Assembly (NCBI RefSeq): GCF_000737315.1
Contig: NZ_JMCB01000003.1
Coordinates: 496,001-560,000 of the forward strand
DNA length: 64,000 bases
Direction of reading: 5' to 3'
From: Hyalangium minutum
Lineage (GTDB): Bacteria > Myxococcota > Myxococcia > Myxococcales > Myxococcaceae
The notes beneath the pieces are model-generated. The model saw nothing but the letters and a program-made list of their open reading frames with translations, had not been told where the DNA came from and made no database searches. A program made the position numbers and the translations under genes. Positions 103 to 62,414 of this stretch are shown here, in pieces. The first letter of the stretch is position 1, and every line of letters starts with the position of its first letter.

Positions 103-110
103 GCGCCACC

Positions 111-752: not shown

Positions 753-755
753 CCC

Positions 756-43815: not shown

Positions 43816-43993
43816 GGCGCGGGACCCTAGAGGAAGCGCTGCTTGAAGGCACCCTGAAACGTTGGATCTCAGGAGGGGACTTCCCTGCTGACGCAGTGCG
43901 AAAAGCGCCAGGCATTCAGTCCTTGCTCGGAGAGCGAGCGGGCGGAGTGCGGGCGCCCTCGCGCTGGGCTGCCGGGCGCTACAGCTTGAGTCC

Positions 43994-45091
43994 ATGCTGC
44001 TGGGACTGACAGGGGATCCAGGGTGGCCCGCGCCCGCCGAAGCGCTGGCGAAAGCGCGTCGCTTCCTGGAGGCACAGAAGGACCGTCATGTCCTCGTGGC
44101 GCCTCATACCGACGTGGATGGGCTCTCCTCGGGAGTCTTGGCGCTGCGGGCACTGCGGACGCTCGGGGCGCGGACCACCTCGCGGCTCCCGGGCAAGGGT
44201 GAGCACGCTCACTCGCCTGCCTTCCAAGAGCGCATGGCCAAAGTGGGCGCCGAGGCGCTCGTGGTGCTCGACATGGGGAGCCGCTCCGCCCCCATCCTTC
44301 CGGGCGTGCCCACGCTCGTCGTGGACCACCACCCGTCCACGGAGTACCCGGAGGGAGCGCTGGTGCTCACCAGCTACGGCCATGAGCCCATCGCCCCCAC
44401 GAGCCTGTTGACCTATTCGCTCGTCTCGCCCCTGGTCATCCCTGGCCCACTGGAGTGGCTGGCTGTGCTCGGCACCGTGGCGGATCTCGGGGTGGATGCT
44501 CCCCTGCCCTCGCTCAAGGACGCGCTGCGACGCGCGGGGCGTAAGGCCGTGACGGAAGCCGTGGCCTTGCTCAATGCCGCGCGACGCTCGTCCCACTTCG
44601 CCGCGTCCCTGGGGCTCGAGGTGCTGATGCGCGCGGGCAGCGCCGCGGACATCAACGAGGGCCGAGTGCCCGGCGTGGACGCGCTTCGTGACTGCCGTCT
44701 GGAGGTCCAGCGCGAGGTGACCCGCTGTGCGAAGACCCCTCCCCGCTTCTCTGGGAACGTGGCGCTGCTGCTGTTCAGCTCCGGCGCCCAGGTCCACCCG
44801 CTGGTGGCGGTGCGCTGGGCCCAGCGGCTGCCCGAGCACATCGTCATCGCCGCCAACGCGGGCTATCTCCCCGGCCGGGTGAACTTCGCCGTGCGCAGCC
44901 GCGAGCCGAGGGATCTCATCGCCTTCTTGCGCGGGCTGGAGCTGCCCTTCGAGGGCGAGTACGCCCGGGGCCATGCCCAGGCCACCGGAGGCAGCCTCTC
45001 CGCCCGGGAGTTCCTCCAGTTCACCGAGGCGCTCGGCTTCCGAGGGCTCCAGGCGAACGACGTGGAGCGCCGGGGCGTCGCGCCAGGCTGA
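43994..45091 (+). CDS. DHH family phosphoesterase (RecJ-like)
   Basis: HTDVDGLSS, LDMG, VDHH, GTVAD, GHAQATG. Confidence 0.88.
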   Translation: MLLGLTGDPGWPAPAEALAKARRFLEAQKDRHVLVAPHTDVDGLSSGVLALRALRTLGARTTSRLPGKGEHAHSPAFQERMAKVGAEALVVLDMGSRSAPILPGVPTLVVDHHPSTEYPEGALVLTSYGHEPIAPTSLLTYSLVSPLVIPGPLEWLAVLGTVADLGVDAPLPSLKDALRRAGRKAVTEAVALLNAARRSSHFAASLGLEVLMRAGSAADINEGRVPGVDALRDCRLEVQREVTRCAKTPPRFSGNVALLLFSSGAQVHPLVAVRWAQRLPEHIVIAANAGYLPGRVNFAVRSREPRDLIAFLRGLELPFEGEYARGHAQATGGSLSAREFLQFTEALGFRGLQANDVERRGVAPG

Positions 45092-47615: not shown

Positions 47616-48911
47616 TCAGTCCACCGAGGCCTGCGTGGCGAAGAAGACCACGCGGCCTCCCGAGGCGGGATCCGTGACGCCACTGACGCCCTCGGTGGCC
47701 GTCCACAGGTTGGTGCCCGAGCCCGTGGCGTGCATGCCCTCGGGCATCTTCGCCCACTGGGCGCTGCCCGACAGGTAGGCCGTGCGCGAGGCGCTCGTGG
47801 ACACCTTGAAGAGCGCCCCGCCATAGCGCGTGGAGCTCAGCCAGTACGAAGTGGCCGCCGTCGAGGTCATGATCGGAGCCACGCCCTGCACGTTGGGCTC
47901 GTTCATGATGTAGGCCTTCTCAGGGGCCACCAGGCCACTCACCGTCTTCAGCTTGTTCGTGGCGGAGTCCAGCGGCCAGCGGTAGAGCCGTCCACCCAGC
48001 CCCGGCGTCGAGCCGTCATAGGGGCACGAGGTGCCGGTGTTGTTGCAGTACTCGCCCGAGAGCACCACCGGCGTGGTGCCGCGCGTGTCCTTGCCCAGGA
48101 AGGAGAACTTCGGGCGGCACGGGCTCACGGTGGCCGTGGGCACCACGTACGCGCTCACCTGCGGCAGCACGTACTTGTACCCGTAGGCGCACCACACCGA
48201 GCCCACCTTCCCGATCGCCGTCTCACACGTAGTGCTGGTGTCCACCTGGCGGATCTGCGTGAGGTCGAACACGCGGATGCCATCGGCGGTGTCGGCCATA
48301 TAAAGGTAGTTGCCGAACCAGGCCAGGCCACCGCCGTGCTCGGGGATGGTGGTGAAGTTGCCGGAGCTGGTGGGCCGCACCAGCAGCACGTGCCGGTAAT
48401 TCACCGCGCTCAGGGACATGTCCGAGATGTCCGCCACGGAGATGCGCACGCCCTTGTCCGGAGCGGCGGCCGCGTAGTGCCAGGCGACGACGGCGACGTT
48501 GGTGCTACCGGAAACGCCCGCCGTCATGCCCTGGGGGATCCACTCTGTGGTGGACATGTCCCCGTCGTTCCAACGGAAGCCGCCCTTGTAGCCCGCCGCC
48601 GGCGGGTGGTTGAGCGAGCCCAGCACAGGCCCTGCACGGTTCAGATCCAGCAGGACATCATCCAGCCCCAGTGCCGGACCCACAGGCGTCATGTACGAGG
48701 TGTAGGCGCTCCAGGTGTTCTGATCCTGCAGCTTCAGGCAGCTCGCATCGTGCGTCGCGAGCGGGGCGCCCTCGGTGAGGGCCTGCTGCACGGCCCCCGA
48801 GCCCTCCTCTGGGAGCGCCTCGGCCTCGGGGCCACACCCCGTCAGCCCCGCCCCCGCCAGACACACCGCGATGAACAGGCCTCTTCCCTCTGTGAACGCG
48901 CTCTTCAACAT
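47616..48911 (-). CDS. Secreted hypothetical lipoprotein, probably beta-propeller
   Basis: Lipobox LTGC; PQG, HGGGLAW, NVQG and MPEG blade-like motifs. Confidence 0.72.
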   Translation of the reverse strand: MLKSAFTEGRGLFIAVCLAGAGLTGCGPEAEALPEEGSGAVQQALTEGAPLATHDASCLKLQDQNTWSAYTSYMTPVGPALGLDDVLLDLNRAGPVLGSLNHPPAAGYKGGFRWNDGDMSTTEWIPQGMTAGVSGSTNVAVVAWHYAAAAPDKGVRISVADISDMSLSAVNYRHVLLVRPTSSGNFTTIPEHGGGLAWFGNYLYMADTADGIRVFDLTQIRQVDTSTTCETAIGKVGSVWCAYGYKYVLPQVSAYVVPTATVSPCRPKFSFLGKDTRGTTPVVLSGEYCNNTGTSCPYDGSTPGLGGRLYRWPLDSATNKLKTVSGLVAPEKAYIMNEPNVQGVAPIMTSTAATSYWLSSTRYGGALFKVSTSASRTAYLSGSAQWAKMPEGMHATGSGTNLWTATEGVSGVTDPASGGRVVFFATQASVD

Positions 48912-49019
48912 GTGCTCCTTGCTCGAACCGTGTCCCCATCAGAGGGCCCGAAATCACGGTTATCCCAATTTAATTGGATTTTTCCTGTTAGACTGGGACA
49001 TCACCGCCGAGGCCCTCTC

Positions 49020-50033
49020 ATGGCGCCGTCCCCCCGGAAAGCTCCCCCCACTCCCTTTGGGGACTACCTCCTCCTCGATCGCATCAGCATTGGCGGCATG
49101 GCCGAGCTCTGGCGCGCCAAGATGTTCGGGAGCGAGGGCGGCGGGCGGCTCGTGGCGCTCAAGCGGATCCTCCCGTTCCTGTCGATGGACGAAGAGTTCA
49201 TCGCGATGTTCCTGGACGAGGGGCGGCTGGGGCTCCAGCTGCTCCACACCAACATCGCGCAGACCTTCGAGATGGGACAGGTCAACTCCGAGCCCTTCCT
49301 CTCCATGGAGTACGTGGCCGGCAAGTCGCTGGGAGACATCTTCGAGCACCACCGCAAGGGGGGCGAGCCCGCGCCCCTGCCCCTGGTGCTCCACTGCATC
49401 GCGGAGATGTGCGCGGGCCTGGACTACGCGCACCGGAAGAAGGACGGCACGGGGAGAGACTTGAACCTCGTCCACCGAGGCCTCTCCCCCCACGACGTGC
49501 TGCTCTCCTTCAACGGTGAGGTGAAGGTGATCGACTTCGGGATCGCCAAGGCCACGGGCCGGGTGACGCAGACGCAGCCCGGCATCATCAAAGGCAAGTT
49601 CGGCTACATGAGCCTGGAGCAGATCGACGGCCCGGCGGTGGATCGGCGCGCGGACGTATTCGTGATCGGCGTGTGCCTCTACGAGCTGCTCACGGGCGAG
49701 CGGCTCTTCCCGGGGGATAACCCGATCGACATCATCGAGAAGATGCGCCAGATGCAGGTGGCGCCGCCGTCCCAGTTCAACGCCGACGTGCCCCAGGTGC
49801 TGGATCGGATCGTCTTCCGCGCGCTGGCGCCCAACGTGAACGAGCGCTACGCGTACGCGAGCGAGCTGGGCGACGATCTGCGGCGCTTCCTGGCCCAGTA
49901 TGGCGAGCGCTTCACGCAGGAGGATCTGCGGAAGTACCTGCGCACCACCTTCGCGCAGGATGTCCAGAGAGAGGAGCAGCGGCTGCGGGAGTACGCGCAG
50001 ATGACGCCGCCCAAGGACTTCGACTTCTCCTGA
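49020..50033 (+). CDS. Pkn-type Ser/Thr kinase domain with degenerate catalytic loop (probable pseudokinase)
   Basis: IGGMAEL, VALKRI, DFGIAK and GKFGYMS are present, but HRD...N reads HRGLSPHD. Confidence 0.88.
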   Translation: MAPSPRKAPPTPFGDYLLLDRISIGGMAELWRAKMFGSEGGGRLVALKRILPFLSMDEEFIAMFLDEGRLGLQLLHTNIAQTFEMGQVNSEPFLSMEYVAGKSLGDIFEHHRKGGEPAPLPLVLHCIAEMCAGLDYAHRKKDGTGRDLNLVHRGLSPHDVLLSFNGEVKVIDFGIAKATGRVTQTQPGIIKGKFGYMSLEQIDGPAVDRRADVFVIGVCLYELLTGERLFPGDNPIDIIEKMRQMQVAPPSQFNADVPQVLDRIVFRALAPNVNERYAYASELGDDLRRFLAQYGERFTQEDLRKYLRTTFAQDVQREEQRLREYAQMTPPKDFDFS

Positions 50034-50038
50034 GCGCG

Positions 50039-50377
50039 CTACCCGGCGAGGAGGCTGTGGGCCTCGACGGGGACCTGGGTGAAGCGCACGCCCATGCGGC
50101 TGGGGGACTGGGACTCACCGGCGGGCTGGGCCCAGACCACCTCGCCCCGGAAGGGCAGCTCGCGGCCATCGACTTCGAAGGTGCCGTGGAGCAGCGAGCC
50201 GGGGATGAAGACGAACGGAGCCTCCACGCTGAAGCCACCCGCGGAGACATCCGCGGTGTGGACCGGCAGCCGATTGCCGAGGAGGAGCGAGACACTGCGA
50301 GCGCTACGGGCAGAGCGGGAACGGAGCATGCACACATGGTGATACATCCCTGTGGCTCCGCAAGTTTCCCGCTCCAC
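50039..50377 (-). CDS. PilZ domain protein (start uncertain)
   Basis: DVSAGG, GEVVW and MGVRF beta-barrel motifs. Confidence 0.75.
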   Translation of the reverse strand: MERETCGATGMYHHVCMLRSRSARSARSVSLLLGNRLPVHTADVSAGGFSVEAPFVFIPGSLLHGTFEVDGRELPFRGEVVWAQPAGESQSPSRMGVRFTQVPVEAHSLLAG

Positions 50378-50451: not shown

Positions 50452-50964
50452 TCAGCGAGGCTCTGGCTCAACCGGCTCCTTGAGCCTCTGAAGAGGGACT
50501 GCGTCCCGGCTCTTGGGGACAACGTGGGCACTGACCAACCACTTCCCAGAAGGATCCCCTCCTACAATAAGCAGGATGGGTTCAGGGCAGCGATAATCCG
50601 CAGTGCTTGCGATGATCTCGAGTTGCTGAAGATCTGTATCGCTCGGCACCGGCGCAGCGTAGGGGTGGAAGTGCCACTCACCCAGATAATGGGCACCACG
50701 TGAGGCCCAGCGGCGATCGAGCCATCTCTGGAGACCTCTCGTGCCACGCTGGAACCAGCTTGGCCCGCGAACCGAATCTACGGGGGAGCCAGACGCAGCA
50801 CTCACCCGAGCACAATCGAGCGCGGCGGAGTACACCCCCACGAGGATGCCTCCCGTCTCTTTCCTCCACGAAGAGCGGCACAGGTGGAGAAGCCGCCGGA
50901 CGGTGGCCCCTGGGATATGCACACCGAAGCGGGCATCCGCAGAGCGAAATTCAAGATCGGGCAT
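50452..50964 (-). CDS. cap3: CBASS Cap3-type JAB/Mov34 peptidase
   Basis: ETGGIL, YLGEWHFHP, PSDTD; follows the E2-E1 gene. Confidence 0.9.
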   Translation of the reverse strand: MPDLEFRSADARFGVHIPGATVRRLLHLCRSSWRKETGGILVGVYSAALDCARVSAASGSPVDSVRGPSWFQRGTRGLQRWLDRRWASRGAHYLGEWHFHPYAAPVPSDTDLQQLEIIASTADYRCPEPILLIVGGDPSGKWLVSAHVVPKSRDAVPLQRLKEPVEPEPR

Positions 50965-52783
50965 GGGCTTCCACAGGGGACACATGGTTCACTCCGCGGA
51001 AGAAGTCGTTGTGTTCATCACGCTCATAGACATCAAGACGCGCGGCAGGGCGCGCCGTTGCCGCCTGCACCAGCGACTTCACTGCGATAGCAGCGGCCAA
51101 CGCCACGTCATCCGCCCGAGCAGGAAAGACGGGATGCCAGCAACCGAGTCCCTCCCTGGGAAGATTGGTGCGCTTGAGCTCGTCGTGCTCCAGGCGGATC
51201 CACGACCCGGCCTGCTTCCAGAACTCCTCGAACGGAAAAGAGGTGCCCGTAGCGCTGAAGCACAAGAGACGCCGGGCCCTCACACCAAAGGAAGTGGAGA
51301 AGAACAGGCGGGACGCTTCCCAGGCAAACCGGTGCAGCGTCTCAAGGACCTCGTCCGAGGCGGTACAGTCCAGGATCGTGTCGCAACGAGATACGAGCCA
51401 AGTGCTTCGAGCCATTTGATCGTCTAACTGTTTCCGAAAGGCATGGACCTGCAGGTCCGGATTGAGGGTGCGCAGATGATGCGCGAGCGCCTCGGCCTTG
51501 GAATACCGGACATCCGTTACGTCGAGTGTGTGGCGGACGAGATTCCCGGCTTCGAGAGTTTCTCCATCCAGAATGACTAGGCGGGAGACGCCGCCACGGA
51601 CGAGCAATTCCGCCATGGCGGAGCCCAGAGCCCCTGCGCCAAGCAACAACACCCATGAGCTTCGCAGCGGCTCCGGCAGCGCTCCACGGCTCCGCAAATC
51701 TTCGGGCGCCCAGTTTTCAGTGCGGAGCCAGTGAATCGGACGTGCTTTCTCGAACAGATTGACCTGATCGTAGAGCCAATACCCCTGCTCGTTACGGCGG
51801 TAGCCGCGCGGAGCCAGGTCGCCATGGGCGAAGATTGGCAGCCGAAGCGCCCACCAATGCATGCGCACGTTCGGCCCATCGATCTTCTCCGGAATCGGAA
51901 AGCCGATGAGGCACAGGTGGCGCTCGCCATCCCGGAGCTTCGAGGAAAAACCCTGAAGCTCCTTTCGGAGCTCCAGTCCCCGGGACCGAAGCGCCTCCTC
52001 CAGCTCGGGCCAGCACGTGGGAGGGGCATAGGGGGACAAAACTGGGAGCGAGTCACACCGCATCCACGGTACACGGAAGCGTCGTCGTCGAGACCTTGAG
52101 CGGAACAGGTCTCCCCAGTCGAGCGAGACCAGCCGCCGGCCGTCGAGCGAGGAGAACGCATCGACAACACACAGCCGCGGGTTTCCAGGAACCGTGACCA
52201 AGTCCGCCCATCCCCGCGACTCTTGGCACTTCATCCAAGTGCCAAGTTCCCCAGGTCTCTCCCTGAAGACCACTTGCAAGGTTCCGTCCGTGGGCAGGTC
52301 GGGCAGTTCAAAGGCGTGACCTGGGGCGAGTAGACGGCCTTGGGCCGCAGCTTCAAGCCAGTCCCGTGCGCCCTTCACGTGCCACGCGAGCCGTGCCTCA
52401 GGGCTCCGGGGTTCCTCCTCTCTTGCCCGCAGTCCAAGCGCTGCAAGCCCTGTCTGCAGACACAGCCGCCCTTCCCGCCACGGCCGAGCTGCTGGCCCTG
52501 GATTGTTCAGGCGTTGGTGCGGATGCGTGCCCTCGATTCCACCCTTCTTGGAGGGGAAGAAGTCGATTCGTCCCCAGGGATAGTGCGCGTCGATGAGCGC
52601 ATACCAGTCCGTCCATGCGGGGATGGAGCTCCCCGTGGTGTCCGCACGAAGGCGCAACGGGAGGACCCAACACTGCTCCTCTGAGTCCCAGTCCACGTCT
52701 CCGAGCAGTTCCACTCCGGCTATTCCATCCAGGACACGACGGCCCAGGCGGAGTGAGTCCGTCAGCGAGGGCGCGTCTGTCAC
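50951..52783 (-). CDS. cap2: CBASS Cap2-type E2-E1(ThiF) fusion
   Basis: N-terminal E2-like region (YPWGRIDFFP, HQ, GRLCL); ThiF LLGAGALGS, DGETLEAGNLVRH, DCTA; C-terminal GCWHPVFPA. Confidence 0.92.
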   Translation of the reverse strand: MTDAPSLTDSLRLGRRVLDGIAGVELLGDVDWDSEEQCWVLPLRLRADTTGSSIPAWTDWYALIDAHYPWGRIDFFPSKKGGIEGTHPHQRLNNPGPAARPWREGRLCLQTGLAALGLRAREEEPRSPEARLAWHVKGARDWLEAAAQGRLLAPGHAFELPDLPTDGTLQVVFRERPGELGTWMKCQESRGWADLVTVPGNPRLCVVDAFSSLDGRRLVSLDWGDLFRSRSRRRRFRVPWMRCDSLPVLSPYAPPTCWPELEEALRSRGLELRKELQGFSSKLRDGERHLCLIGFPIPEKIDGPNVRMHWWALRLPIFAHGDLAPRGYRRNEQGYWLYDQVNLFEKARPIHWLRTENWAPEDLRSRGALPEPLRSSWVLLLGAGALGSAMAELLVRGGVSRLVILDGETLEAGNLVRHTLDVTDVRYSKAEALAHHLRTLNPDLQVHAFRKQLDDQMARSTWLVSRCDTILDCTASDEVLETLHRFAWEASRLFFSTSFGVRARRLLCFSATGTSFPFEEFWKQAGSWIRLEHDELKRTNLPREGLGCWHPVFPARADDVALAAAIAVKSLVQAATARPAARLDVYERDEHNDFFRGVNHVSPVEAHARS

Positions 52784-53874
52784 GCGAACCTACCGCTGCC
52801 CACCATTCCCGGCCCTCCCTGGTGCGGTGTGAAGTTTCCTTGTGGGGGTGAGCCGCGCCCGGGCTCCGGGGCTCGTGGGAACTTGTCGCCAAAGAGCTCT
52901 CGCCATAGCGGCGCCGCCGTCTGCGCATCGGGTGCCTCGAAGGCTTGGCGTGCCTTTTTCGCGGCAGCGGCCACCTGCGCATGGAACTTCGCGAAGTCGT
53001 CACCGCTGATACGTGCCATGACGTTCTGATCCACACCCCGGTCTGGTGCGTAGGGAGCGTGCGTATTGGCGGCATGCAATGCGTAGCTCTGAGTGAACCG
53101 CTCCAAAGTCCGGACCACACCCTCGGCCACGGACGAGATTCCGTCCGGGCAGCAATCGCCGATGAGGTGCTCCAGTGGATAGCTCTTGGGCCGGTCAGGC
53201 AGTGCGCCCGCGTGAACAAGCCGCCACCACTTGAGGGCCTTCACGACGTTGACGAAGTGCCCCGAGCACCGGGCGTTCTTTTGGCTCGTCCAGCTCAGCT
53301 GTACCAGCGGGTGGGTGTCCTGCCACGCGCCCAAATCCCGGTCCGGAATCCGTAGCGGCTCCGACTTCCACTGAGGGTTGCCGTTCGAGTCTGTCTTGAC
53401 GATCGGCTGCGACTCGTCCTCTTCGATCTGGAGGACGTCCTCGCTCTTGGCGAACGCGCTGTAGACACCAGCCTCGGCTTCCACCGGCGCGGCAGTAATG
53501 ACGAGGTCCATCTCCACGGTGGACATCACGATGCCGAAAGAGCGGCCCTGCTGCCGGTACTTGTCGTGGTAGTACTTCTCGAGAAAGGGCCTGAAGCAAG
53601 CCATGGCCTCAGCGGGCGTGAACTCGGACTCCTTCATGCGGGTCACAACGATGAGGTCGACATCCGCCTTCTTGCCGTCCTTGGGCCGGACCGCTGTGCG
53701 GCGCTTGTAGCTGCCCTGGAGGAACATGCTCACGAAGCCTGTCTTGAGCTGCGCGTCCGACTGCAGGCGCTCCTTCAGCCTGGAGTACCCATCAATCATC
53801 TCGGCACGCTGGGCTTTGGTCGGACGGATGTCTTGGAGGAAATCAGCGAAGTAGGTGGGAAGGGGAAGTGTCAT
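52780..53874 (-). CDS. cGAS/DncV-like nucleotidyltransferase (CD-NTase 1, Cap2-associated, 364 aa)
   Basis: FLQGSYKRRTAVRP...ADVDL, MDLV, VKALKWW, PKSYPLE; C-terminus ...GSGRFA. Confidence 0.93.
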   Translation of the reverse strand: MTLPLPTYFADFLQDIRPTKAQRAEMIDGYSRLKERLQSDAQLKTGFVSMFLQGSYKRRTAVRPKDGKKADVDLIVVTRMKESEFTPAEAMACFRPFLEKYYHDKYRQQGRSFGIVMSTVEMDLVITAAPVEAEAGVYSAFAKSEDVLQIEEDESQPIVKTDSNGNPQWKSEPLRIPDRDLGAWQDTHPLVQLSWTSQKNARCSGHFVNVVKALKWWRLVHAGALPDRPKSYPLEHLIGDCCPDGISSVAEGVVRTLERFTQSYALHAANTHAPYAPDRGVDQNVMARISGDDFAKFHAQVAAAAKKARQAFEAPDAQTAAPLWRELFGDKFPRAPEPGRGSPPQGNFTPHQGGPGMVGSGRFA

Positions 53875-53935: not shown

Positions 53936-55387
53936 TCAGCGCGAAAGCCGGTCCACGAGCCGCACCGCCGGGTCTCCCAGCAGGGTGTAGCTTGTGAGGT
54001 CGTGCCGCTCCATCCACAGGTGGGCTCGCTCCGTGGTCCGCTCTTTGGCCTGCTCCTCGTCAATCTCTCCGGACAGCGACTGACCCGAGGAGCCAGCTGC
54101 GGCGGTCTCTTGGTGATACTTCCGAAGTTCCCTGTCTGCCTTCGAGGCAAAGCGCGACAGGGAATGAAGCGCGAGCCCCACCCGGGAGCCCTCCACCATG
54201 GTCGTCAGCACATCCTCCAGCCGGTGGGTATGCGTCTCCCCGTTCCGGGGATTATGGAAAGCGCAGATCCATGCCATGTCCAGGTGGCCGATAACAGCGA
54301 GGGGCCCTTTGGGATTGGCCAGCGCTGCTTGGGGCAATGCTGCGATAAAGGGCCGCGCATCTAGGGGGCGGGACCGATCGACACGCTCCAGTACCCATTG
54401 CGACATCACGCTCGTTTGGACGAGTTGCTCCATCCAGGGCCGGAACACGCTCCGCGTCGGCGTGCCCGCGCCGAAGCAAGCAAAGTAGAACCAGATGCCT
54501 CCCGGCAGGAACTCCTTCTGACGGACCTCGTCGGCAGTCAATGCGGTTCCCTGGCCGAACCACATGTTGCCCTGCTCCCGCCTCTGCGCTTCCGGGCTCA
54601 CCCAACCCGAGGTTGGCGCCCCAACGCCATGACTCAAAGTGAAGAGCAGGCCAGGCTCCGGAGCACGGACCAGTTCCAGCAGCTTTTCTTTGGCGCCCGC
54701 GGGCAACTGCTCCACCGTCAGGGAACTCGCCGGAAAGTATCCCTTGTCGCGAGCCTCCGAGCACCGCTGTGCCGCCGGAGCGACGACGAACCTGTGGCCG
54801 CTCAGCACCGGGGGCGACATGTCCTGCGCCGTCAAAAATACAGCCCGGGCCTGCTGAGGACGTGCCGCATCCCGCTCACGGGTCAGCACCTTCTCAACAT
54901 AAGCTGCGTAGTCGTCCTCTCGCTCGAAGGGCAGGCGCCCCACGAGGGTGACGCCTTCGCCCGTCAGTTCCTCCTGCAGTTCCATCGAGAGATCTTCTGG
55001 TGTCCCAGCGAGCAGCACGTAGCTGGCGTGCTCTCGCGAAGACCGGGACGTCGGGTACATCGTGTCGGCCAGGAACTTACGTGCCTCTTTCTCATTCATC
55101 CCCGGAGGGGCACGGTAAATGTCCACGCTCCGGCGCTGCTCTTCCGCACGACGCTTGCAAAGCGGCGAGAGGATGGCTTCGAGGCGCCGGCCTCTCTCGT
55201 TGTCAGGAACTACGAGCGCCCATCTCTGCTCCTCGAGCGAGTTCGGATCGGCGGACAGGTTGTACAGGTGGGTGGGCTTGGGCAGGGGCACTGGAAGCGG
55301 TGCCTCCCACAGGGACTCCAGCGGAAGAGGCATCTCGATGACGGGGCGCCCGTCTCCTGCCTGTGCGAGCAATAGCTGCAGTGTCAC
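53936..55387 (-). CDS. Gingipain(C25)-like clan CD cysteine protease
   Basis: YVLLAG, VGRLPF, TLSHG (His), YFACFGAG (Cys), AVIGH, LLGDP. No obvious signal peptide. Confidence 0.75.
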   Translation of the reverse strand: MTLQLLLAQAGDGRPVIEMPLPLESLWEAPLPVPLPKPTHLYNLSADPNSLEEQRWALVVPDNERGRRLEAILSPLCKRRAEEQRRSVDIYRAPPGMNEKEARKFLADTMYPTSRSSREHASYVLLAGTPEDLSMELQEELTGEGVTLVGRLPFEREDDYAAYVEKVLTRERDAARPQQARAVFLTAQDMSPPVLSGHRFVVAPAAQRCSEARDKGYFPASSLTVEQLPAGAKEKLLELVRAPEPGLLFTLSHGVGAPTSGWVSPEAQRREQGNMWFGQGTALTADEVRQKEFLPGGIWFYFACFGAGTPTRSVFRPWMEQLVQTSVMSQWVLERVDRSRPLDARPFIAALPQAALANPKGPLAVIGHLDMAWICAFHNPRNGETHTHRLEDVLTTMVEGSRVGLALHSLSRFASKADRELRKYHQETAAAGSSGQSLSGEIDEEQAKERTTERAHLWMERHDLTSYTLLGDPAVRLVDRLSR

Positions 55388-55740
55388 TTCTTCCCTCCCT
55401 TGCCGTCTCCCTTGCTGTCTCCCTTGCCTTCCTTGATCCCAGGACGGCTGGTGCTGCCCGCTTTGTCTCCTCCCGTGTTGGTATCGGTCGGAGGCATGCC
55501 GTAAGTCACCCGCGCTCCCTCGGCCTTGACCTGCGCCACAAAGCGGTCGAGATCCGCGAGCGACCCCTGGACTACAAAGATGACCTGCGGCTGGTCATCC
55601 ATCACCCCATAGGCAGTGAAGCTTCCCTCCTCGCGCGACTGGACGATGTAAACGTGACGCCCTTCCTCTGGATACCCCTCGAAGAACGGCTTGCTATCCC
55701 ACTTCGAAAAATCCAGCGGCTCCACCGACTCACCCGTCAT
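55384..55740 (-). CDS. Small hypothetical protein (118 aa) with Gly/Lys/Asp-rich tail
   Basis: GGAGG RBS before ATG 55740; stop overlaps the next GTG. Confidence 0.75.
   Translation of the reverse strand: MTGESVEPLDFSKWDSKPFFEGYPEEGRHVYIVQSREEGSFTAYGVMDDQPQVIFVVQGSLADLDRFVAQVKAEGARVTYGMPPTDTNTGGDKAGSTSRPGIKEGKGDSKGDGKGGKK
55396..55431. repeat. Three 12-bp near-tandem repeats encoding the (D/E)-x-K-G tail
   Basis: TCCCTTGCCGTC, TCCCTTGCTGTC, TCCCTTGCCTTC. Confidence 0.8.
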
Positions 55741-55787: not shown

Positions 55788-58757
55788 TCACTCGAACACC
55801 AAGACGCCATTGATCCAGTCGGAGTCTTTACCCCCGCGCAGCCACTCGAGGCGTTCGTCGCGAGTAGCAATGCTAGGAGACGCACCTGCCCGGATGCGCT
55901 CGCGCACACTGCCGAAGAAGTCGGATGCGTCCTCGTTGGGGATGGGCTGGGTCGCAGCCAGCACCGTGCGTGCCCCCGCAGTGAGAAAGGCGTTGGGTAG
56001 GCTGCCATGCTCATGAAGGGCGGAGGTTCCGCGCGCGGCCTCGCAGGCCGCCAGGACGACCAGAGGCGCACTTGGGAGCTTCAGCTTGCGAATGCGGTCC
56101 TCGTAAAGCTCATCACTGCCATCCGACCCTGGGGCCAACAGCAAGTAGGCTGTGTTCGAGCCCGGATCGATCTGACCGTGCGTCGCCAGGTCGATTTCCG
56201 TCGCCTCTTGCAAGGCCGCCAGCACGCGGTTCGGGGTGGCATCCAAGTCCCGCAGGGTCCGAAGTGACGCGCCCGGCGCCACATGGGGCGACCACGTCAG
56301 TGAGAGTTGACTGCGTTGCTCGTCGTACCGGACCTCGCTCACCACGACGTGCACGCTGAGCCCTTGCGGAGGTTGGGGCGAAGTGGACCGCGTCCGGTAC
56401 CGCCAGGCGAACTCTGGAGGAAGGAGTCCAGCGCGTCCCTGCAAAGGAGGCCGGGCCAGGACATCCACCGAGGCACAGGGTCTGAGGGCCTCCACCATGT
56501 CCTGGGGTACGACTCCCGCCAAGCTCGTGGGTTCGAACCTCTCACCGCGCACGGGGGCGTATTTGCTCATCCACTGCCCCTCCGAGCCCCGCGCCACCAA
56601 CAGGCTTCGCTCGGTATCCTCAGTGAGCGCGAGGACGCACCGCGCCGGTACAGCGAGGCCCAACTCCGAGCCGAAGAGCCCCAGCGCCGCCGCGAAGTCG
56701 CTCTTCGCGGCGGCGGCGAAGATGAGGGACGTGTAGCTGTAGGCACGGGCATGCCTTGCCGTGACATCATCCGGCGACGCGGAATCCGCCTCGTGGATGG
56801 CCTCTTCCAGCAGCGCACGTCCCTTAATGGCATCCACCTCCACCAGGAAACGCCCCTGAAGGAACTTCGCGTAGGCCTGCTGCCCCAGGGTGTTCCCTGG
56901 CTCCAGCGCCAGCGCCTGCTCCACGGCCGCAGCGTCTCGGGGAGAGCGACGCGTCCGGGCCACGTCCACCAGAGCTTCAATGCCATGCCACGTGAGTGGC
57001 AATCCAACAGCCATGGCTTGATCCAGTTCGGCCCGCGCGTCATCCAACTCCAACGCCTGAATGGCCAGATGGGCGAGGTTCTGATGGATGTTGCGCGCGC
57101 TCTTCGAGTCGCCCTCGGACATCAAGAGAGCCTCGCCGAAGTAAGCACGGCCCAGTGTCACGTCCGCCGCCAGACGCGCGGCGTTGCCCAGCGTCTGCAG
57201 CAGCACTCGCTCCCGATCCCACTGGGCCAGCCGGGCCAATGCCAATCCAGCGCGGGCGTGCCGCTCGGCATCGCTGACCTGAAAGAGCCAGCCAAACACG
57301 TGGGACAAATCGTTCTCAACATCAATGCACCGATAGACCAGTTGCTCTCTCTTGCAGAGGTCGAGCGCCTCCTCGAGGAGTTTCTGCGCCCGGGTGTAGC
57401 GCTCCTGTTCTTGTTCCCGCGATGCCTCCACCTGGAGTCCCAGAACCCGGAACCAAGGGTCCGGGTGAGCACGGGTCCGCTCCACGAGCTTGCTGGCGTA
57501 TTGAGGACGGTGCTGGATGAGGTACGTGAGCGCGCCTAGAGCGAGATCGTCCTCACGCGACGCGAGAAACTTCTGGAGCAGCGCCTCCTCGTCGCGCGCT
57601 TCCACCTGCCCATTCATCAACTGGGCATATTGGGCCGCCAGCGGGGCGCGGACCGAGAAGTCCCGTGCGGCGATGCGCTGCACGTACTCCGCGAGCACCG
57701 TGCCGCCTCCCACGCTCTCATCCAGTTTCCTGGCCAAGGGAAGGAACTCGCGAACTTCCGCAGCGGACGTCCGGGCACGCACAGCGTGATAGAAGTCACG
57801 GCGCATCAACGGAACGTCTGCATAGAGAAGCGCCTGCGACAGTGCGGGAACGCCTCGGGCAATGAGCTCGCCTCCGGCTGCATCTGCTTTCTGCCAACGC
57901 TCCTTTCTCTGCAAGGCGCCGGAAAGCCGCTCCCTCTTTGCCCGGGCCTCGTTCCGCCAGCGCTCATCAGGCTCGGTACGCTCCAGCGACTCCAAGTCCG
58001 CCATGGCTGACAGGGGCAGCCCCAGGTCCCGGAACACCAGGGCACGGTTCCAACGCGCCTGGACGTGACCCGGCTCCCTGCGAAGCACCTCATTGAAAAG
58101 ATGGAGCGCTTCCCGGAACTCCGCCATCGCGCTGGAAACCTCCTGGGACCGGGCGGCCACATAGTGCGCAACCCCCAGGTCACAGAGCACGTTCGCGTCC
58201 CATTTGCGCTCGCTCCGCATCCGCTTCAGGAGCACCTTGGCACGCGCGGTATCGGGTGCGCCGCCCGCCAAGTAGGCCGCAGCCAACTGAGGCAGATCCC
58301 CCCGTTCCTCCAACTGCCCCATGACAGCGTGAGAGAACCCATTCACATTCGAAGTGGGTGCGGAGCCCATGGGAATCTGGGCCAACGATCGGTAGGTGTC
58401 CGCCTCTGGATACGTGACGCGTGCTTCCAGCGTCCGCTGCTGCCGCGCCCACAGCGCGGGCTCCACTCGCGATACGGACTTGCCCGTGAGGCCCAAAGCG
58501 AGCAGCAGCACGGCGGCAACGGATACCACCGCCGCACTGGCCGCCAACCACCGGTTCCGCGGAACGGCGTGCCAAGGCACCTCTACCGGGCCATGCCGCT
58601 CCAGGTAGCGCTTGCCGAGTTGTTCAAGCTGCAGCAGCCGAGTCAGCTCTGCCTGGCACCGCTCACACCCTGCCAGGTGCTTGCCGAAGGCCTGGGCGTC
58701 TGCTGGCGAGAGTTCTCCATCCGCGAAGGACTGGAGTGGGTCGCAGGGAGAGGACAT
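55788..58757 (-). CDS. Zinc-finger anti-sigma (zf-HC2), hydrophobic segment, TPR and CHAT protease fusion (989 aa)
   Basis: HLAGCERC (Hx3Cx2C); LAASAAVVSVAAVLLLALGL; TPR-like ARWNRALVFRDLGL; CHAT LATHG and VLAACE. Confidence 0.88.
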   Translation of the reverse strand: MSSPCDPLQSFADGELSPADAQAFGKHLAGCERCQAELTRLLQLEQLGKRYLERHGPVEVPWHAVPRNRWLAASAAVVSVAAVLLLALGLTGKSVSRVEPALWARQQRTLEARVTYPEADTYRSLAQIPMGSAPTSNVNGFSHAVMGQLEERGDLPQLAAAYLAGGAPDTARAKVLLKRMRSERKWDANVLCDLGVAHYVAARSQEVSSAMAEFREALHLFNEVLRREPGHVQARWNRALVFRDLGLPLSAMADLESLERTEPDERWRNEARAKRERLSGALQRKERWQKADAAGGELIARGVPALSQALLYADVPLMRRDFYHAVRARTSAAEVREFLPLARKLDESVGGGTVLAEYVQRIAARDFSVRAPLAAQYAQLMNGQVEARDEEALLQKFLASREDDLALGALTYLIQHRPQYASKLVERTRAHPDPWFRVLGLQVEASREQEQERYTRAQKLLEEALDLCKREQLVYRCIDVENDLSHVFGWLFQVSDAERHARAGLALARLAQWDRERVLLQTLGNAARLAADVTLGRAYFGEALLMSEGDSKSARNIHQNLAHLAIQALELDDARAELDQAMAVGLPLTWHGIEALVDVARTRRSPRDAAAVEQALALEPGNTLGQQAYAKFLQGRFLVEVDAIKGRALLEEAIHEADSASPDDVTARHARAYSYTSLIFAAAAKSDFAAALGLFGSELGLAVPARCVLALTEDTERSLLVARGSEGQWMSKYAPVRGERFEPTSLAGVVPQDMVEALRPCASVDVLARPPLQGRAGLLPPEFAWRYRTRSTSPQPPQGLSVHVVVSEVRYDEQRSQLSLTWSPHVAPGASLRTLRDLDATPNRVLAALQEATEIDLATHGQIDPGSNTAYLLLAPGSDGSDELYEDRIRKLKLPSAPLVVLAACEAARGTSALHEHGSLPNAFLTAGARTVLAATQPIPNEDASDFFGSVRERIRAGASPSIATRDERLEWLRGGKDSDWINGVLVFE

Positions 58758-59299
58758 CAGTGAGTTCCCTCATCGAGGTAAGGCTTGAGCAACTCGCCGA
58801 GCCTCTGGCGAGCATCGAACAACCGCTTGGCCACGAGTCCAGCAGACACGCCCAGCTTGCTGGCGATCTCCTGGTTGCGCAGTCCCTGGGAGCGGAGCAG
58901 AAAGGTGAGCCGCTGCTGCCGGGGCAGCTTCTCGATGGCCCACTCGAAGCGCTCCCGGGTGATGCGCTCGTACGTGTCCGAGGCCGCTCCCTGTCCCAGC
59001 GTCCAGCGGGTGATGGTCGGATCGTCTTCTGCCTTCTTCCGGCCCATGGTGCCTCGGATCAGGTCATAGAAGTGATTGGTCATGACGGTAATGAGCCAGC
59101 CATCCACTGGCTCTTCGTCCGCCTGGAGCGCTCCAGTGAAGCGCTCGACGAAGCGCAGCAGCGCCTCCTGGACCAGGTCTCTGGGTTCTATGCCCCCGAA
59201 GGCGCGACACAGTTTCTCGGCAATGGGCATCAGCAGCGCGTAATGCTTGGCGTGCCACTCATCGAAATTGCTGGCCACAATCTCCCCGGCGCTCTTCAT
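58757..59299 (-). CDS. ECF (sigma-70 group 4) sigma factor
   Basis: DLVQEALLR, WLITVMTNHFYDLIR, region 4 GLRNQEIASKLGVSAGLVAKRLFDARQRL. Stop overlaps the anti-sigma start. Confidence 0.93.
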   Translation of the reverse strand: MKSAGEIVASNFDEWHAKHYALLMPIAEKLCRAFGGIEPRDLVQEALLRFVERFTGALQADEEPVDGWLITVMTNHFYDLIRGTMGRKKAEDDPTITRWTLGQGAASDTYERITRERFEWAIEKLPRQQRLTFLLRSQGLRNQEIASKLGVSAGLVAKRLFDARQRLGELLKPYLDEGTH

Positions 59300-59381
59300 G
59301 ACCGTGTCTCCGGTCCGTCCCCAATAAGGACACGGAGGGCACATGAATTATTACGTCCCGACATGCGGGCAGCAGGGAGGA

Positions 59382-61331
59382 TCATGAGCGGCGCCCGGCT
59401 TTGCGCGTGACGCATCCAGACCAGGGGACCTCCACATAGCCCTCGGACCTCCGGAAGTTGAAGAGCTTGAAGGTGGGATGCGTTTTCGGGTTGTAGACCC
59501 TGCCCAGTGCTGCTGCCAGACTGGCCGGACACGCCAGCGCGAGCCACACCTCTTGAACGTCTGGCCATTCAGCGCGGATGCGCTCCAGACATGTGCGGAA
59601 CTCCTCGACGGCATGTGCCGTGTCCAGAGGTCCTCGCAGCACCGTAGGTGAGGGCCCACGGGCTGCCACCAGGCGCACCAGCGCGGGAGGTGCCTCGGTC
59701 CCCAGCCACCGGGCCAGTTCCTCGGAGTGGATGGACAGGTTCACCTCAAGGGTCATGGCCAGGCGTCCCCCCGATGCGCGTCCGGCCTCGGGAGCCGGCC
59801 AAGCCTCCTCCCGGAAGAACTTCTCCTCAGAAGAAGGCTGCTGCATGGAGTCGTAGCCACAGGTCCAAACGCCGGTGCGTCCTCTTTGCTCCTGGTACAC
59901 GCTCAGCTTCCACCGGCTCAACCGCCACCCCAGATGGAACATGAGCGGCAAGGGGGCACGCCCGAAGAGGTGCACCTTTGAAACGTGTGTTCCAAGCGCG
60001 TCTACGAGCTGATCGGCCTGATCGAGTGCGCGCCGCCACTCCCGGGAGGTGGCGGGCAAATCATCCCTGACCTTGTCAAAGGGCTGCAGCACGACGACAT
60101 CCGGATCCTCACCGGCCTCTCCTTTGAGCGCCTCGATGATGGAGGCATGCGCCACGTTGAAGTTCACCTCGTAGGCCACCACGAGTTCCTCCGGAAGCTC
60201 GGGGAGCGGCGTGTCTGGCGAGAACACTATGCGTTGCCCGCGCGCACGGGCCTCGGGCGGAGACTGCGCAAAGAACTGGAGCGATGCCCAGTCGAGGGAC
60301 GACGCACTCAGTACCTCATGGGCTTTCTGAAAGGCTTCGTAGATGGGGACATTCTGTCCGCAGAGAGCTTGGTAGAACGCCCCCGTCATCTGTACAGAGC
60401 CGTTGATGCTCAGGGGCATCTGCGATGCGATGACCGCTGGGATGCCGAGGCGGTGAAGGTCGTGGGCCACCCCTCCAAACATGCTCCCCACCTGACCAGG
60501 ATTACCGCCGTGACATGCGCTCAGCACGATTGCCTGTAGATCCCGGTGATAGGGACCCAGCACATCGCGAAGGCTGTCTCCATCAATCCGCGTGGGTCTG
60601 CTCGGCCGATGGGGATCTTTCCAGCTCAGTCCAAACGTTCCTCCGGGAACTGGGCCTCCGTGACACAGGATGTGGAGGATGCGAAACGGCTTCCCCTCTT
60701 GGCGTGCCTTTTTCAACCTGCTGCGAAGCGAATCCAGGGTCACATCCTTGAGTGCGTCCTGATCCTGATTGAAGTCGGGACACGCCTTCTGGATGGCGGA
60801 GAGATGGCGGTCCTCCTCGACATCCCCCTCCGCGTCGGACCAGGCGAACAGAACCCGGCCATGGCGGTGGGAGGCCGGGGGAGTCAACGTGTTGTGGGCC
60901 CATTCGAACTGCAGGGGATGCGGCGCGATCGTGCCAAGGCTTCGGCCTCCATGGCTGAGCGAAGTCAGTGACCAGGGGAGGCTGAACAGTTCCCCTGCGC
61001 TGAAGCGAAATAGCAGCCGACGAGGTGTGTGCGTTTCCTCGGCCTCAAGTAGAGCGTTCTCGTAGGCCTCCCAGCCCTCCAGTTCTTTCAGCACGTCCTC
61101 GAGAAATCTGCGCAGCAGATCACCCATCTGCCTTCGTACGGAGGAGGAGGGATCCGGGCGCAAGAACTCCGAACGAAGCGTCTCCACCTTGTCCCATGCG
61201 AGAAGGGCCGCCCCCAGCTTCCCCTTCGCACCTCGCGCGAAGTACTGCTGGGGCCTTCCATCAAACGCATAGGGCTCGTTCGGCCTCTCCGAGCGGCCCA
61301 ACTCGATTGTCAGCGTGCGCAGTCCAGGCAT
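59382..61331 (-). CDS. CHAT protease-SAVED sensor fusion (649 aa)
   Basis: CHAT: ELFSLPW, LHILCHG, VLSACHGG, AVIASQMP. SAVED: VHLFGRAPLPLMFHLG, VYQ, VWLALACPASLAAALG, GYV. Confidence 0.9.
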   Translation of the reverse strand: MPGLRTLTIELGRSERPNEPYAFDGRPQQYFARGAKGKLGAALLAWDKVETLRSEFLRPDPSSSVRRQMGDLLRRFLEDVLKELEGWEAYENALLEAEETHTPRRLLFRFSAGELFSLPWSLTSLSHGGRSLGTIAPHPLQFEWAHNTLTPPASHRHGRVLFAWSDAEGDVEEDRHLSAIQKACPDFNQDQDALKDVTLDSLRSRLKKARQEGKPFRILHILCHGGPVPGGTFGLSWKDPHRPSRPTRIDGDSLRDVLGPYHRDLQAIVLSACHGGNPGQVGSMFGGVAHDLHRLGIPAVIASQMPLSINGSVQMTGAFYQALCGQNVPIYEAFQKAHEVLSASSLDWASLQFFAQSPPEARARGQRIVFSPDTPLPELPEELVVAYEVNFNVAHASIIEALKGEAGEDPDVVVLQPFDKVRDDLPATSREWRRALDQADQLVDALGTHVSKVHLFGRAPLPLMFHLGWRLSRWKLSVYQEQRGRTGVWTCGYDSMQQPSSEEKFFREEAWPAPEAGRASGGRLAMTLEVNLSIHSEELARWLGTEAPPALVRLVAARGPSPTVLRGPLDTAHAVEEFRTCLERIRAEWPDVQEVWLALACPASLAAALGRVYNPKTHPTFKLFNFRRSEGYVEVPWSGCVTRKAGRRS

Positions 61332-61336
61332 GGTTC

Positions 61337-62218
61337 CTACCGGACTGGGTAGTCCGTCCCCAACAACTCCCGCCAGAGTTCGTTCGCGCCAGGCATGTCG
61401 ACCCGCCGCTCAAGTTCCAGCGCTCGGGCCGCCTTGCGTGAGGCGCCCGAAAGCCGCTGCTGCCCTTGCTGAAGATGCCCCTCCCCTACTCCGGCATTCA
61501 CAGGAGGCCCGAGCCCAGCGGGATCCTTCCAGTCAGCCCGGATGTGCTCGCTCATGAACTGAAACAGATGCGCCATGCCCTGCGCGTAGACGGACGGGTG
61601 GGACTCCGGCTGGAACGAGGCAATGCCCTCGTAGGCCATCACCTCCAGCAAGAACGACGGCACCGGCTTGCCTTGGAGTTGGTTCCAGCGCTTGATGGCC
61701 TTGATGAGCGGCTTCAGCCGCTGCATCGCTTTCCTGTTCGCCTCGTCACAGGCCGCGATGTGCTTGCGCGGATTGCTCCGGATCCACTGCCCCAAGCGCA
61801 TATCGGGAATCCAGTAGATGCCCGGCTGGCGCAGATCTTCGAACGCGGGGACCACATCGAAACCGATGCCCGTCCCGGAGAACTCAATGTTGACCGAGCG
61901 GTTTTGCAGTCGCGGTTGCTTGCCGCGGAACTCCTTCCGCAGCGCTTGCGCGACGCGCTCGAGAAACTCTTGTGGCTGCAGGACCTTTCCGTTTCCGCTC
62001 GAGTCCGTCGTGAAGATGAGGAAGAGGTCGATATCGTGCAAAGGCCGGATGGCCGTATTCCGTCCATACGAGCCACTGAGAATGGACTCCCGCGGGCTCA
62101 GATGGTGACGCAACGCATCGAAGACGACCCGCTCCTGACGCTGCGCCTCGCGGTTCTCACCTTCGCGGAGCTCTAGGTCCTGCATGAACTGCTCGAATGA
62201 CTGCGCCACAGTCGGCAT
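61337..62218 (-). CDS. Second CD-NTase/SMODS nucleotidyltransferase (293 aa)
   Basis: LSGSYGRNTAIRPLHDIDL, FDVVPA, NPRKH, LIKAIKRWN, SFLLEVMA. Confidence 0.92.
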   Translation of the reverse strand: MPTVAQSFEQFMQDLELREGENREAQRQERVVFDALRHHLSPRESILSGSYGRNTAIRPLHDIDLFLIFTTDSSGNGKVLQPQEFLERVAQALRKEFRGKQPRLQNRSVNIEFSGTGIGFDVVPAFEDLRQPGIYWIPDMRLGQWIRSNPRKHIAACDEANRKAMQRLKPLIKAIKRWNQLQGKPVPSFLLEVMAYEGIASFQPESHPSVYAQGMAHLFQFMSEHIRADWKDPAGLGPPVNAGVGEGHLQQGQQRLSGASRKAARALELERRVDMPGANELWRELLGTDYPVR

Positions 62219-62414
62219 CGTTGGTGTCTCCTCTCTTGCTAAGAGACACGAAGGAGACCGCAGGCATTACATCTGCTGAGCACAGCAAGCCGACAATTCC
62301 TGGACTACATTGCCCCACCTCCTTCGCGCAGGGCGTCCAGCGCGAGGAGCAGGAGAGAGCAAATTTCCCGCTCTCCCCCTCCCCTTCAGCTCAAGGCCGC
62401 GCGAGCGTCTCCGC

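Follow-up and report, generated by a model that had tools for sequence, protein, structure and literature searches.

A gingipain-like cysteine protease encoded together with a small partner protein in an ECF sigma factor cassette of Hyalangium minutum

A 64,000-nucleotide stretch of the Hyalangium minutum genome (RefSeq assembly GCF_000737315.1, contig NZ_JMCB01000003.1, positions 496,001 to 560,000; hereafter the window) was analysed for a pair of adjacent minus-strand genes, which encode a small protein and a C25-like cysteine protease. The pair follows the gene for an orthologue of the Myxococcus xanthus anti-sigma factor DdvA, which lies directly upstream of the small gene, and it is located in an island that also contains a sigma factor of the extracytoplasmic function (ECF) type and genes of a cyclic-oligonucleotide-based antiphage signalling system (CBASS) (Table 1). 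The existence of the pair and the C25 label of the protease are already in print for the M. xanthus orthologue (PMC6061681; PMC11506125), and therefore this is not a discovery of new genes. In the searched literature, no published function for the pair was found, and nothing was found that joins gingipains, CHAT proteases and anti-phage defence.

Table 1. Positions in the window of the gene pair, its sequence features and the surrounding island
Feature	Position	Strand	Basis or remark
Small-partner gene	55384..55740	minus	118 amino acids, ATG start; open reading frame list, 21 close homologues
C25-like (clan CD) cysteine protease gene	53936..55387	minus	483 amino acids, GTG start; orthologue of M. 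xanthus MXAN_7287
GTGA overlap, small-gene stop TGA / protease start GTG	55384..55387	minus	sequence
Shine-Dalgarno site GGGAGGG of the protease gene	55393..55399	minus	5 nt before GTG; sequence
Catalytic His253 codon (S-H-G)	54629..54631	minus	directly after strand 246-251
Catalytic Cys304 codon (F-A-C)	54476..54478	minus	directly after strand 298-302
Invariant Asp189 codon	54821..54823	minus	weak profile alignment (E 0.07) onto RgpB Glu152
Conserved linear motif PPTDTNTGGDKAGSTSRPG	55438..55494	minus	residues 83-101, just after the domain, pLDDT <50
12-bp tandem repeat	55395..55428	minus	Tandem Repeats Finder: period 12, 2.8 copies, 90% matches; encodes KGDSKGDGKG
DdvA orthologue, zinc anti-sigma domain/one transmembrane helix/periplasmic TPR-CHAT	55788..58757	minus	Pfam zf-HC2, TPR, CHAT; 1361 bits to PDB 8rot/8rw5 DdvA
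DdvS orthologue, ECF sigma factor	58757..59344	minus	Pfam Sigma70_r2, r4_2; 72% identity to M. xanthus DdvS
DdvS-type promoter motif P2, GTAA-N16-CGT, before ddvS	59332..59354	minus	motif scan
CHAT-SAVED, cyclic-oligonucleotide-gated protease, CBASS effector	59382..61331	minus	Pfam CHAT + SAVED; PADLOC SAVED_CHAT E 5e-83
CD-NTase 1	61337..62218	minus	PADLOC cyclase E 5e-85
P1 promoter motif of CD-NTase 1	62248..62270	minus	motif scan
DdvS-type promoter motif P3	53887..53909	minus	in the 67-nt gap, protease stop to CD-NTase 2
Type II CBASS unit	50452..53868	minus	Pfam SMODS, ThiF, Prok-JAB
CD-NTase 2	52780..53868	minus	PADLOC cyclase E 5e-139
Cap2 E1/E2	50951..52783	minus	Pfam ThiF
Cap3 JAB	50452..50985	minus	Pfam Prok-JAB

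The two reading frames overlap by a GTGA sequence, as an initial annotation made from the sequence alone had described; the TGA stop codon of the small gene occupies positions 55386-55384 and the GTG start codon of the protease gene positions 55387-55385 of the minus strand. This GTG is the true start of the protease, since the N-terminal MTLxLLLA is kept across 58 aligned homologues, with L5 and L6 invariant. The public gene call lists a protein of 451 amino acids that begins at an internal GTG 32 codons late, and thus the automated annotation hides the translational coupling. The [AG]TGA overlap was shared by the nine orthologues of 52-73% identity that were examined, while a short intergenic gap replaces it in more distant cassettes (approximately 40% identity). 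The Shine-Dalgarno site of the protease gene falls where the small gene encodes its terminal G-G-K-K, so that GGA GGG AAG AAG TGA reads as the GGAGG ribosome-binding site plus spacer of the protease gene. A purine-rich GGAGG-type site at an equal distance was present in most loci examined (nine loci), irrespective of the terminal residues of the small protein. The GGKK terminus itself was found in 13 of 21 small-protein homologues, and its conservation is best explained at the DNA level by the ribosome-binding site of the protease. The possibility of GGKK being a ubiquitin-like processing site or a degron was rejected, as these residues are translated GGAGG and spacer and change with that DNA. 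By these sequence features, translation of the protease is coupled to that of the small gene.

A longer version of the small gene, starting from a GTG at 55791, was also considered and rejected, as the extension is not conserved among homologues. Antisense open reading frames (ORFs) over the region, such as that at 54398-55375 on the plus strand, were taken as the usual high-GC artefacts because the minus-strand genes are conserved and their products have homologues, the antisense frames themselves being unsearched.

The structure of the protease was predicted with AlphaFold2 (AF2) using 58 homologues, which gave a predicted local distance difference test (pLDDT) score of 92.9 and a predicted template modelling score of 0.93. 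Foldseek comparison of this model against the PDB revealed gingipain K (4rbm and 6i9a; E 2e-9) and gingipain R (1cvr; E 2e-8, template modelling (TM) score 0.51-0.56) as the best matches; taken with 4ief, the gingipain entries ranged from E 2e-9 to 1e-7 with probability 1.0 and TM scores of 0.44-0.56. They were followed by the TPR-CHAT of craspase, caspase-9 (E 2e-4), separase and the SAVED-CHAT filament. The whole chain could be aligned to gingipain catalytic domains over 462-477 alignment columns. Sequence searches gave a fainter picture: Pfam Peptidase_C25 (PF01364) matched residues 356-477 only and marginally (25.4 bits against a cutoff of 23, E 1e-5), a single-sequence search of the PDB gave no match, nothing significant was obtained from NCBIfam and PADLOC (a PorU-related match in NCBIfam at E 0.009 was non-significant), and a profile search aligned the protease weakly with RgpB (E 0.07). 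On the predicted structure, the protease is a member of a distinct C25-like family with a gingipain-like clan CD fold, which agrees with the gingipain-like nature proposed in the initial annotation. Of 8000 protein-database candidates that were scored, at least 728 matched this family. Species-representative genomes contained 309 relatives, often several per genome, and the family was found only in Myxococcota.

The SHG and FAC motifs named in that annotation are present as S252-H253-G254 and F302-A303-C304. In the sequences LLFTLS-H253-G and IWFYFA-C304 each residue of the dyad directly follows a hydrophobic beta-strand, which is the signature of clan CD. His253, Cys304 and Asp189 were each kept in 18 of 18 cassette-linked relatives of the protease; among the other paralogues, the same residues were kept in 67, 65 and 66 of 67 sequences, respectively. 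The catalytic residues are under purifying selection. In the weak profile alignment, Asp189 falls on Glu152 of RgpB, the residue that orients the catalytic His.

The protease has the two-subdomain alpha/beta catalytic fold in common with the gingipains RgpB and Kgp (TM score 0.50-0.56) and shares their His-Gly...Ala-Cys dyad, with a sequence identity of 11-12%. Gingipains are held latent by a prodomain. Unlike gingipains, the protease has no signal peptide, covalent prodomain, immunoglobulin-like domain or C-terminal sorting domain of the type IX secretion system, and it carries a long helical hairpin (residues 403-465). The S1 Asp of RgpB is not evidently conserved in the weak alignment. Apart from this hairpin, Pfam and fold comparison revealed a single catalytic domain and no sensor or other domain, and therefore its regulation must be external. 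Neither the protease nor the small protein has a signal peptide or a transmembrane segment, the highest Kyte-Doolittle value over a 19-residue window being 1.0-1.2; that no signal peptide is evident had been noted before. The N-terminus of the protease is a confidently modelled beta-strand of the fold. A cytoplasmic location is predicted from the absence of a hydrophobic N-terminal segment.

The small protein was predicted by AF2 to consist of approximately 82 structured residues in the order beta-beta-beta-beta-alpha-beta, followed by a disordered tail of 33 amino acids; the pLDDT was approximately 85 for the core but did not reach 50 for residues 88-113. With 14 D/E vs 7 K/R the domain is acidic, whereas the tail is basic with seven Lys; the central strand is buried and hydrophobic. 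No amphipathic N-terminal helix, transmembrane segment or barrel-like strand pattern was seen. When six family members were searched against Pfam at E up to 10, no match could be obtained, and NCBIfam and PADLOC gave none for the small protein. Foldseek comparison with the PDB gave a best E of 0.08, with no CI-2 and no beta-grasp match, and comparison with viral structures gave a best E of 2e-3 to an RNA-virus serine-protease polyprotein (TM score 0.35), which was judged to be noise. A profile search of the domain against 1.84 billion cluster representatives at 50% identity returned 36 matches at E ≤ 0.001, all from the same family except for P0171, a repetitive surface protein of 3124 amino acids that was discarded as a false positive. 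The remaining members are 61-267 amino acids long and contain one or two copies of the domain. By these searches, the small protein represents a rare orphan domain.

Across the 21 close homologues, a linear motif directly after the domain, with the consensus PPxDTNTGGDKxxxTSRPG, was conserved to the same degree as the fold, though it is predicted to be disordered. Residues P83, P84, D86, T87, N88, T89, G90, G91, D92, K93, S98, R99, P100 and G101 were invariant or nearly so, and the M. xanthus version of this segment reads PPFSTDTNTGGD. The motif is a candidate segment for docking or cleavage, or a candidate pseudosubstrate. The tail ends with KEGKGDSKGDGKGGKK, encoded by the 12-bp tandem repeat that had been recognised in the initial annotation and was recovered by Tandem Repeats Finder. 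This Lys/Gly repeat is unique to the present genome and absent from orthologous tails, whose length and composition vary freely beyond the motif; that of M. xanthus ends with RSGRREETK and has one Lys. The Lys-rich tail, put forward earlier as a cleavage or conjugation target, is a poor candidate for a conserved target of cleavage or Cap2 conjugation, since the repeat is not conserved and GGKK overlaps the Shine-Dalgarno site of the protease.

Two tandem copies of the domain, in partners of 225-267 amino acids, were found in three of 20 cassettes (and one re-fetched copy). Tandem domains also occur in two close relatives (and one re-fetched copy; 198-204 amino acids), where the motif PPF-x-x-x-TGGDK follows each copy. 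The domain has been tandemly duplicated at least two times independently, in the close relatives (L001/L024, 9390-10004) and in distant cassettes (L031, L033 and L059).

To assess the linkage of the two genes, 87 loci around protease homologues were examined, six of which were near-duplicate fetches of one place. A hidden Markov model of the small domain matched all 20 cassette loci, in which DdvS and DdvA are encoded upstream, and none of the 67 other paralogue loci. In cassettes, the match always lay on the same strand as the protease gene and ended at most approximately 60 nt from its start. The four-gene cassette, consisting of the ECF sigma factor, the anti-sigma factor with TPR-CHAT, the small protein and the C25 protease, was kept down to 38-42% protease identity, and the distance matrices of protease and DdvA correlated with r 0.97. 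At locus L086 the cassette stands alone among housekeeping genes, without CBASS or CRISPR; at L087 it adjoins a CHAT-STAND gene; and at L005 it is found with CBASS in a divergent operon. The pair accordingly accompanies the sigma and anti-sigma genes and not CBASS or Cap2 (L005, L086). A reciprocal search from DdvA homologues in metagenomes revealed eleven further cassettes with both genes, together with at least 25 more distant DdvA-like loci (30-41% identity) with neither the small gene nor the protease gene. Because the pair persists without CBASS and CRISPR, the small protein and the C25 protease would form the conserved core output of the switch.

The non-cassette paralogues of the protease have another architecture. 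Most of them carry a C-terminal HTH_28 domain (approximately 555 amino acids in total), approximately 40% lie beside a gene for a metallophosphoesterase of approximately 450 amino acids, and approximately 28% lie within 10 kb of a gene for a CHAT protein. Some are tandem duplicates or adjoin CHAT or CHAT-STAND-WD40 genes, and one is near a gene of an extracellular contractile injection system. The HTH-fused, metallophosphoesterase-linked paralogues look like a separate uncharacterised conflict module of Myxococcota.

The promoter motif GTAA-N16-CGT was defined in M. xanthus, where DdvS drives four promoters (PMC6061681). On the minus strand of the window this motif was found only before CD-NTase 1, ddvS and CD-NTase 2. 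In the full 64 kb there were four matches compared to approximately one expected by chance, the fourth (57141-57163, plus strand) being antisense inside ddvA and probably due to chance. The window scan revealed no DdvS-type motif before the small gene or the protease gene, whereas such motifs precede ddvS and CD-NTase 2, and therefore the pair is co-transcribed with ddvS and ddvA. On this sequence basis, the transcription unit runs ddvS-ddvA-small gene-C25 gene and ends at P3. The array data of M. xanthus with a Tn5 insertion in ddvA, in which induction of ddvA and of MXAN_7287 was lowered alike, to 8.4-fold and 8.6-fold compared to 204-fold for ddvS (PMC6061681), agree with the pair sharing the ddvS-ddvA unit. 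The P2 motif overlaps the listed ATG of the ddvS ORF (195 amino acids), and orthologues are called at 173-183 amino acids; the true start of ddvS is therefore probably a downstream codon.

The island as a whole is orthologous to the DdvS/DdvA island of M. xanthus. The order of nine genes (CD-NTase, CHAT-SAVED, DdvS, DdvA, small protein, C25 peptidase, CD-NTase, Cap2 and Cap3) is identical in strain DK1622, with identities of 54-76%, the protease being 54% identical to MXAN_7287, and the DdvS promoter motif occurs at the same three places. The differences are that M. xanthus has a Cmr/CRISPR module after Cap3, which the island in the window does not have, and that the small protein in the window has the repeat-expanded Lys/Gly tail. 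In the 2018 description of DK1622, the small ORF upstream of MXAN_7287 had no locus tag and only MXAN_7287-7284 were listed (PMC6061681). Derepression of the regulon protects M. xanthus against phage Mx4, and a strain without ddvA expresses the regulon constitutively, is viable and resists Mx4; which constituents of the island give this resistance is still unknown according to the authors (PMC11506125). The same study places the TPR-CHAT of DdvA in the periplasm, and thus just one CHAT protein of the two is located in the same compartment as the pair.

Further features of the surroundings were noted. At L005 (Archangium sp. Cb G35, 1-3782), a single operon that runs divergently from the sigma cassette encodes CHAT-SAVED together with a DncV-like CD-NTase and Cap2, and CHAT-SAVED is therefore the effector of type II CBASS there. 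This suggests that in the window CHAT-SAVED also serves CD-NTase 2, whose Cap2/Cap3 unit has no effector of its own. Cap3 is followed by a gene with a PilZ domain (50039-50377, minus strand) and, convergent to it, a gene for a Ser/Thr protein kinase (approximately 48900-50033, plus strand); kinases are recurrent neighbours of SAVED-CHAT systems (Steens et al., 10.1101/2023.06.23.546230). An ORF of 669 amino acids at 41986-43995 on the minus strand is a full-length Peptidase_M2 of the angiotensin-converting-enzyme family (E 5e-234) and is unrelated to the island.

The reading that we favour, at a probability of roughly 0.4, is that of a latent cytoplasmic protease held by a co-made partner acting as an inhibitor or pseudosubstrate; in essence, the initial annotation had already proposed this. 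DdvS, once released, would transcribe the four-gene cassette, and coupled translation would yield the His253/Cys304 clan CD protease in a fixed ratio with the small acidic partner. The partner may bind the protease and keep it latent as a chaperone-inhibitor or a pseudosubstrate, for which securin on separase, PCi on PCaspase and a gingipain prodomain acting in trans can serve as models, and the disordered PPxDTNTGGD(K)..SRPG segment may sit within the active-site cleft or close to it. A second signal would then free the protease to cut cellular or phage proteins. Where CBASS is present, CHAT-SAVED activated by cyclic oligonucleotides could provide this signal by cleaving either the partner or the protease; alternatively, a labile partner could decay when host gene expression is shut off. 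The binding, inhibition, trigger and substrates in this scheme are what we infer beyond the observed anatomy, fold, catalytic residues, coupling, operon and linkage. A latch is supported by the evidence for the gingipain fold, the lack of a sensor domain, the coupling, the strict linkage, the rarity of the domain, the conserved motif in a disordered segment and the single transcription unit. M. xanthus tolerates constitutive expression of the regulon (PMC11506125), which argues that the protease is latent even when made. A self-contained latch would fit better than sole dependence on CHAT-SAVED, since the cassette occurs without CBASS and CRISPR (L086) or with divergent CBASS (L005).

Some known systems resemble such a latch. 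In Haliangium ochraceum, SAVED-CHAT activates PCaspase, which is restrained by PCi, and the genes lie next to a sigma factor gene (10.1101/2023.06.23.546230). Both clusters come from Myxococcota and join a second clan CD protease and a small protein to a sigma factor and a cyclic-oligonucleotide-gated CHAT protease, a composition that in either case suggests a cascade of two proteases in which a small partner acts as a restraint. The clustering of a SAVED/CHAT protease with a sigma factor is thus found here as it is there, while the cassette also occurs without a SAVED protein. The second protease of the PCaspase system is of family C14, whereas the present one matches only C25 in Pfam and is gingipain-like; PCi is CI-2-like, whereas no PDB fold matched the partner found here at better than E 0.08. 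The two domains come in the order CHAT-SAVED here and SAVED-CHAT in H. ochraceum, and the sigma factor here has a membrane anti-sigma factor, unlike that of the PCaspase/PCi cluster. The analogy to PCaspase and its inhibitor drawn in the initial annotation consequently holds as a functional one, while membership in that system fails, as the protease is not C14 and the partner is not CI-2-like. Separase and securin offer another parallel, namely a clan CD protease silenced by a largely disordered, co-made pseudosubstrate, and separase was among the fold matches of the protease; these proteins are however eukaryotic and unrelated in sequence, so the analogy is mechanistic only.

Several observations weigh against the latch. 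The small domain resembles no known protease inhibitor in Pfam or in the PDB and viral fold searches. A mirror-tree comparison of small protein and protease, controlled for DdvA and DdvS, gave a partial r of -0.06 (permutation p 0.70) and a weak residual with DdvA (partial r 0.21, p 0.03), in a test that is noisy as the small domain is short and sometimes duplicated. The metallophosphoesterases beside approximately 40% of paralogues belong to a class of protease-activated effectors (10.1101/2025.11.14.688446) and point to proteases that activate their neighbours; by such a logic the small protein would not be an inhibitor but would serve as substrate or effector. Regarding S1 specificity, the weak profile alignment ends one position before Asp163 of RgpB and the extrapolated residue is hydrophobic. 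Lastly, marginal small-domain matches were found at L090 (E 8e-4) and L162 (E 1e-4), after distant DdvA-like genes and with no C25 protease. The L090 match lies at 9480-9974, and the protein of L162 (9059-9688) has a lipoprotein-type signal peptide, MKNLRSALLCILSLSTAAC. This is a hint that the anti-sigma factor's periplasmic CHAT may be another partner of the small domain.

In the main alternative, the small protein would instead be a latent effector or dedicated substrate, whose tail would be removed at the motif by the activated protease so that the freed acidic domain acts on a cellular target, as in Pepco or EACC1. Pepco, a protein of 117 amino acids encoded directly upstream of its protease, has an unstructured C-terminal tail that is charged and Pro-rich, and it becomes active when this tail is removed (10.1101/2025.11.14.688446); the small protein is similar to it in size, gene position and charged disordered tail. 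The frequent metallophosphoesterase neighbours of the paralogues, a listed protease-associated effector class, would fit this possibility too, and an acidic domain with a basic tail would permit autoinhibition. The likeness does not extend to the domain: no Trypco1/Trypco2, Pepco or other Pfam profile matched at E up to 10, the topology is beta4-alpha-beta, and the membrane-active features that would be expected (an amphipathic N-terminal helix, a transmembrane segment or barrel-like strands) were not seen, the central strand being buried. A sensorless protease would also need separate gating, which the stand-alone cassette L086 does not offer, and we regard an effector role as unlikely. Somewhat less likely again is a role within the sigma switch itself, where the protease, with the small protein as adaptor or brake, would clear the N-terminal anti-sigma fragment that intramembrane cleavage leaves of DdvA, or trim DdvS, in a positive or negative feedback on the regulon. 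The pair travels and shares a transcription unit with ddvS and ddvA and not with CBASS, the protease and DdvA matrices correlate closely, many protease paralogues have a C-terminal HTH domain, and the published model needs unnamed cytosolic proteases for degradation of the DdvA N-terminal fragment (PMC11506125). However, the distant DdvA-like loci that have neither gene indicate that the pair is dispensable for such switches, and the only possible output of the stand-alone cassette is the pair. Deletion of MXAN_7287-7284 in a strain without ddvA left DdvS-dependent crRNA (CRISPR RNA) production unchanged (PMC6061681), a background that cannot test cleavage of DdvA.

It is improbable that the two genes are merely co-transcribed and functionally independent, with the coupling reflecting a compact operon. 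Four-base overlaps are common in high-GC operons, and the mirror-tree comparison found no co-variation of small protein and protease; yet the two genes stay linked in position without exception down to 38-42% protease identity, and in none of its other contexts is the protease family accompanied by the small domain. Clan CD also contains transpeptidases, namely PorU (a sortase of family C25 that belongs to the type IX secretion system), legumain and GPI8. A cytoplasmic sortase-like transpeptidase that cuts the small protein at PPxDTNTGGD and ligates the acidic domain to a target amine, giving a protein tag under ECF sigma control, seems a distant prospect; the hints are the layout of the partner, which resembles that of a sorting signal (globular domain, conserved motif and disposable tail), and the non-significant PorU-related match, and nothing specifically supports it. 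Least probable is that Cap2 uses the Lys-rich tail as a target for conjugation or that Cap3 trims it. The genes for both enzymes lie 1-3 kb downstream and the tail offers seven Lys, but its composition is not conserved, as the single Lys of M. xanthus illustrates, the cassette exists without Cap2 or Cap3 (L086 and L087), and GGKK is accounted for by the Shine-Dalgarno site. Ubiquitin-like substrates of Cap2 and Bil have a beta-grasp fold and an exposed C-terminal Gly; the small protein has neither and ends with Lys-Lys (Thr-Lys in M. xanthus). In type II CBASS, Cap2 conjugates the C-terminus of its own CD-NTase, which also counts against this role.

Several elements of the present analysis were not described in the searched literature: the gingipain fold and catalytic triad of the protease, the small protein as a rare and position-restricted domain family, the four-gene cassette as a conserved unit independent of CBASS and CRISPR, the explanation of the small protein's C-terminus by a ribosome-binding site in its codons, and a wider Myxococcota family with HTH fusions and metallophosphoesterase neighbours. 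To our knowledge, control of both CBASS and CRISPR defence by an ECF sigma factor and its anti-sigma factor has been demonstrated for no system other than the M. xanthus island. The function of the pair is directly testable in M. xanthus and E. coli. If the protease is indeed cytoplasmic and latched by its partner, the logic of protease cascades would extend from C14 and CHAT proteases to a gingipain-type family that numbers at least 309 genes in Myxococcota, the small protein would define a new protease-partner domain, and a periplasmic sensor would be linked to a cytoplasmic executioner.

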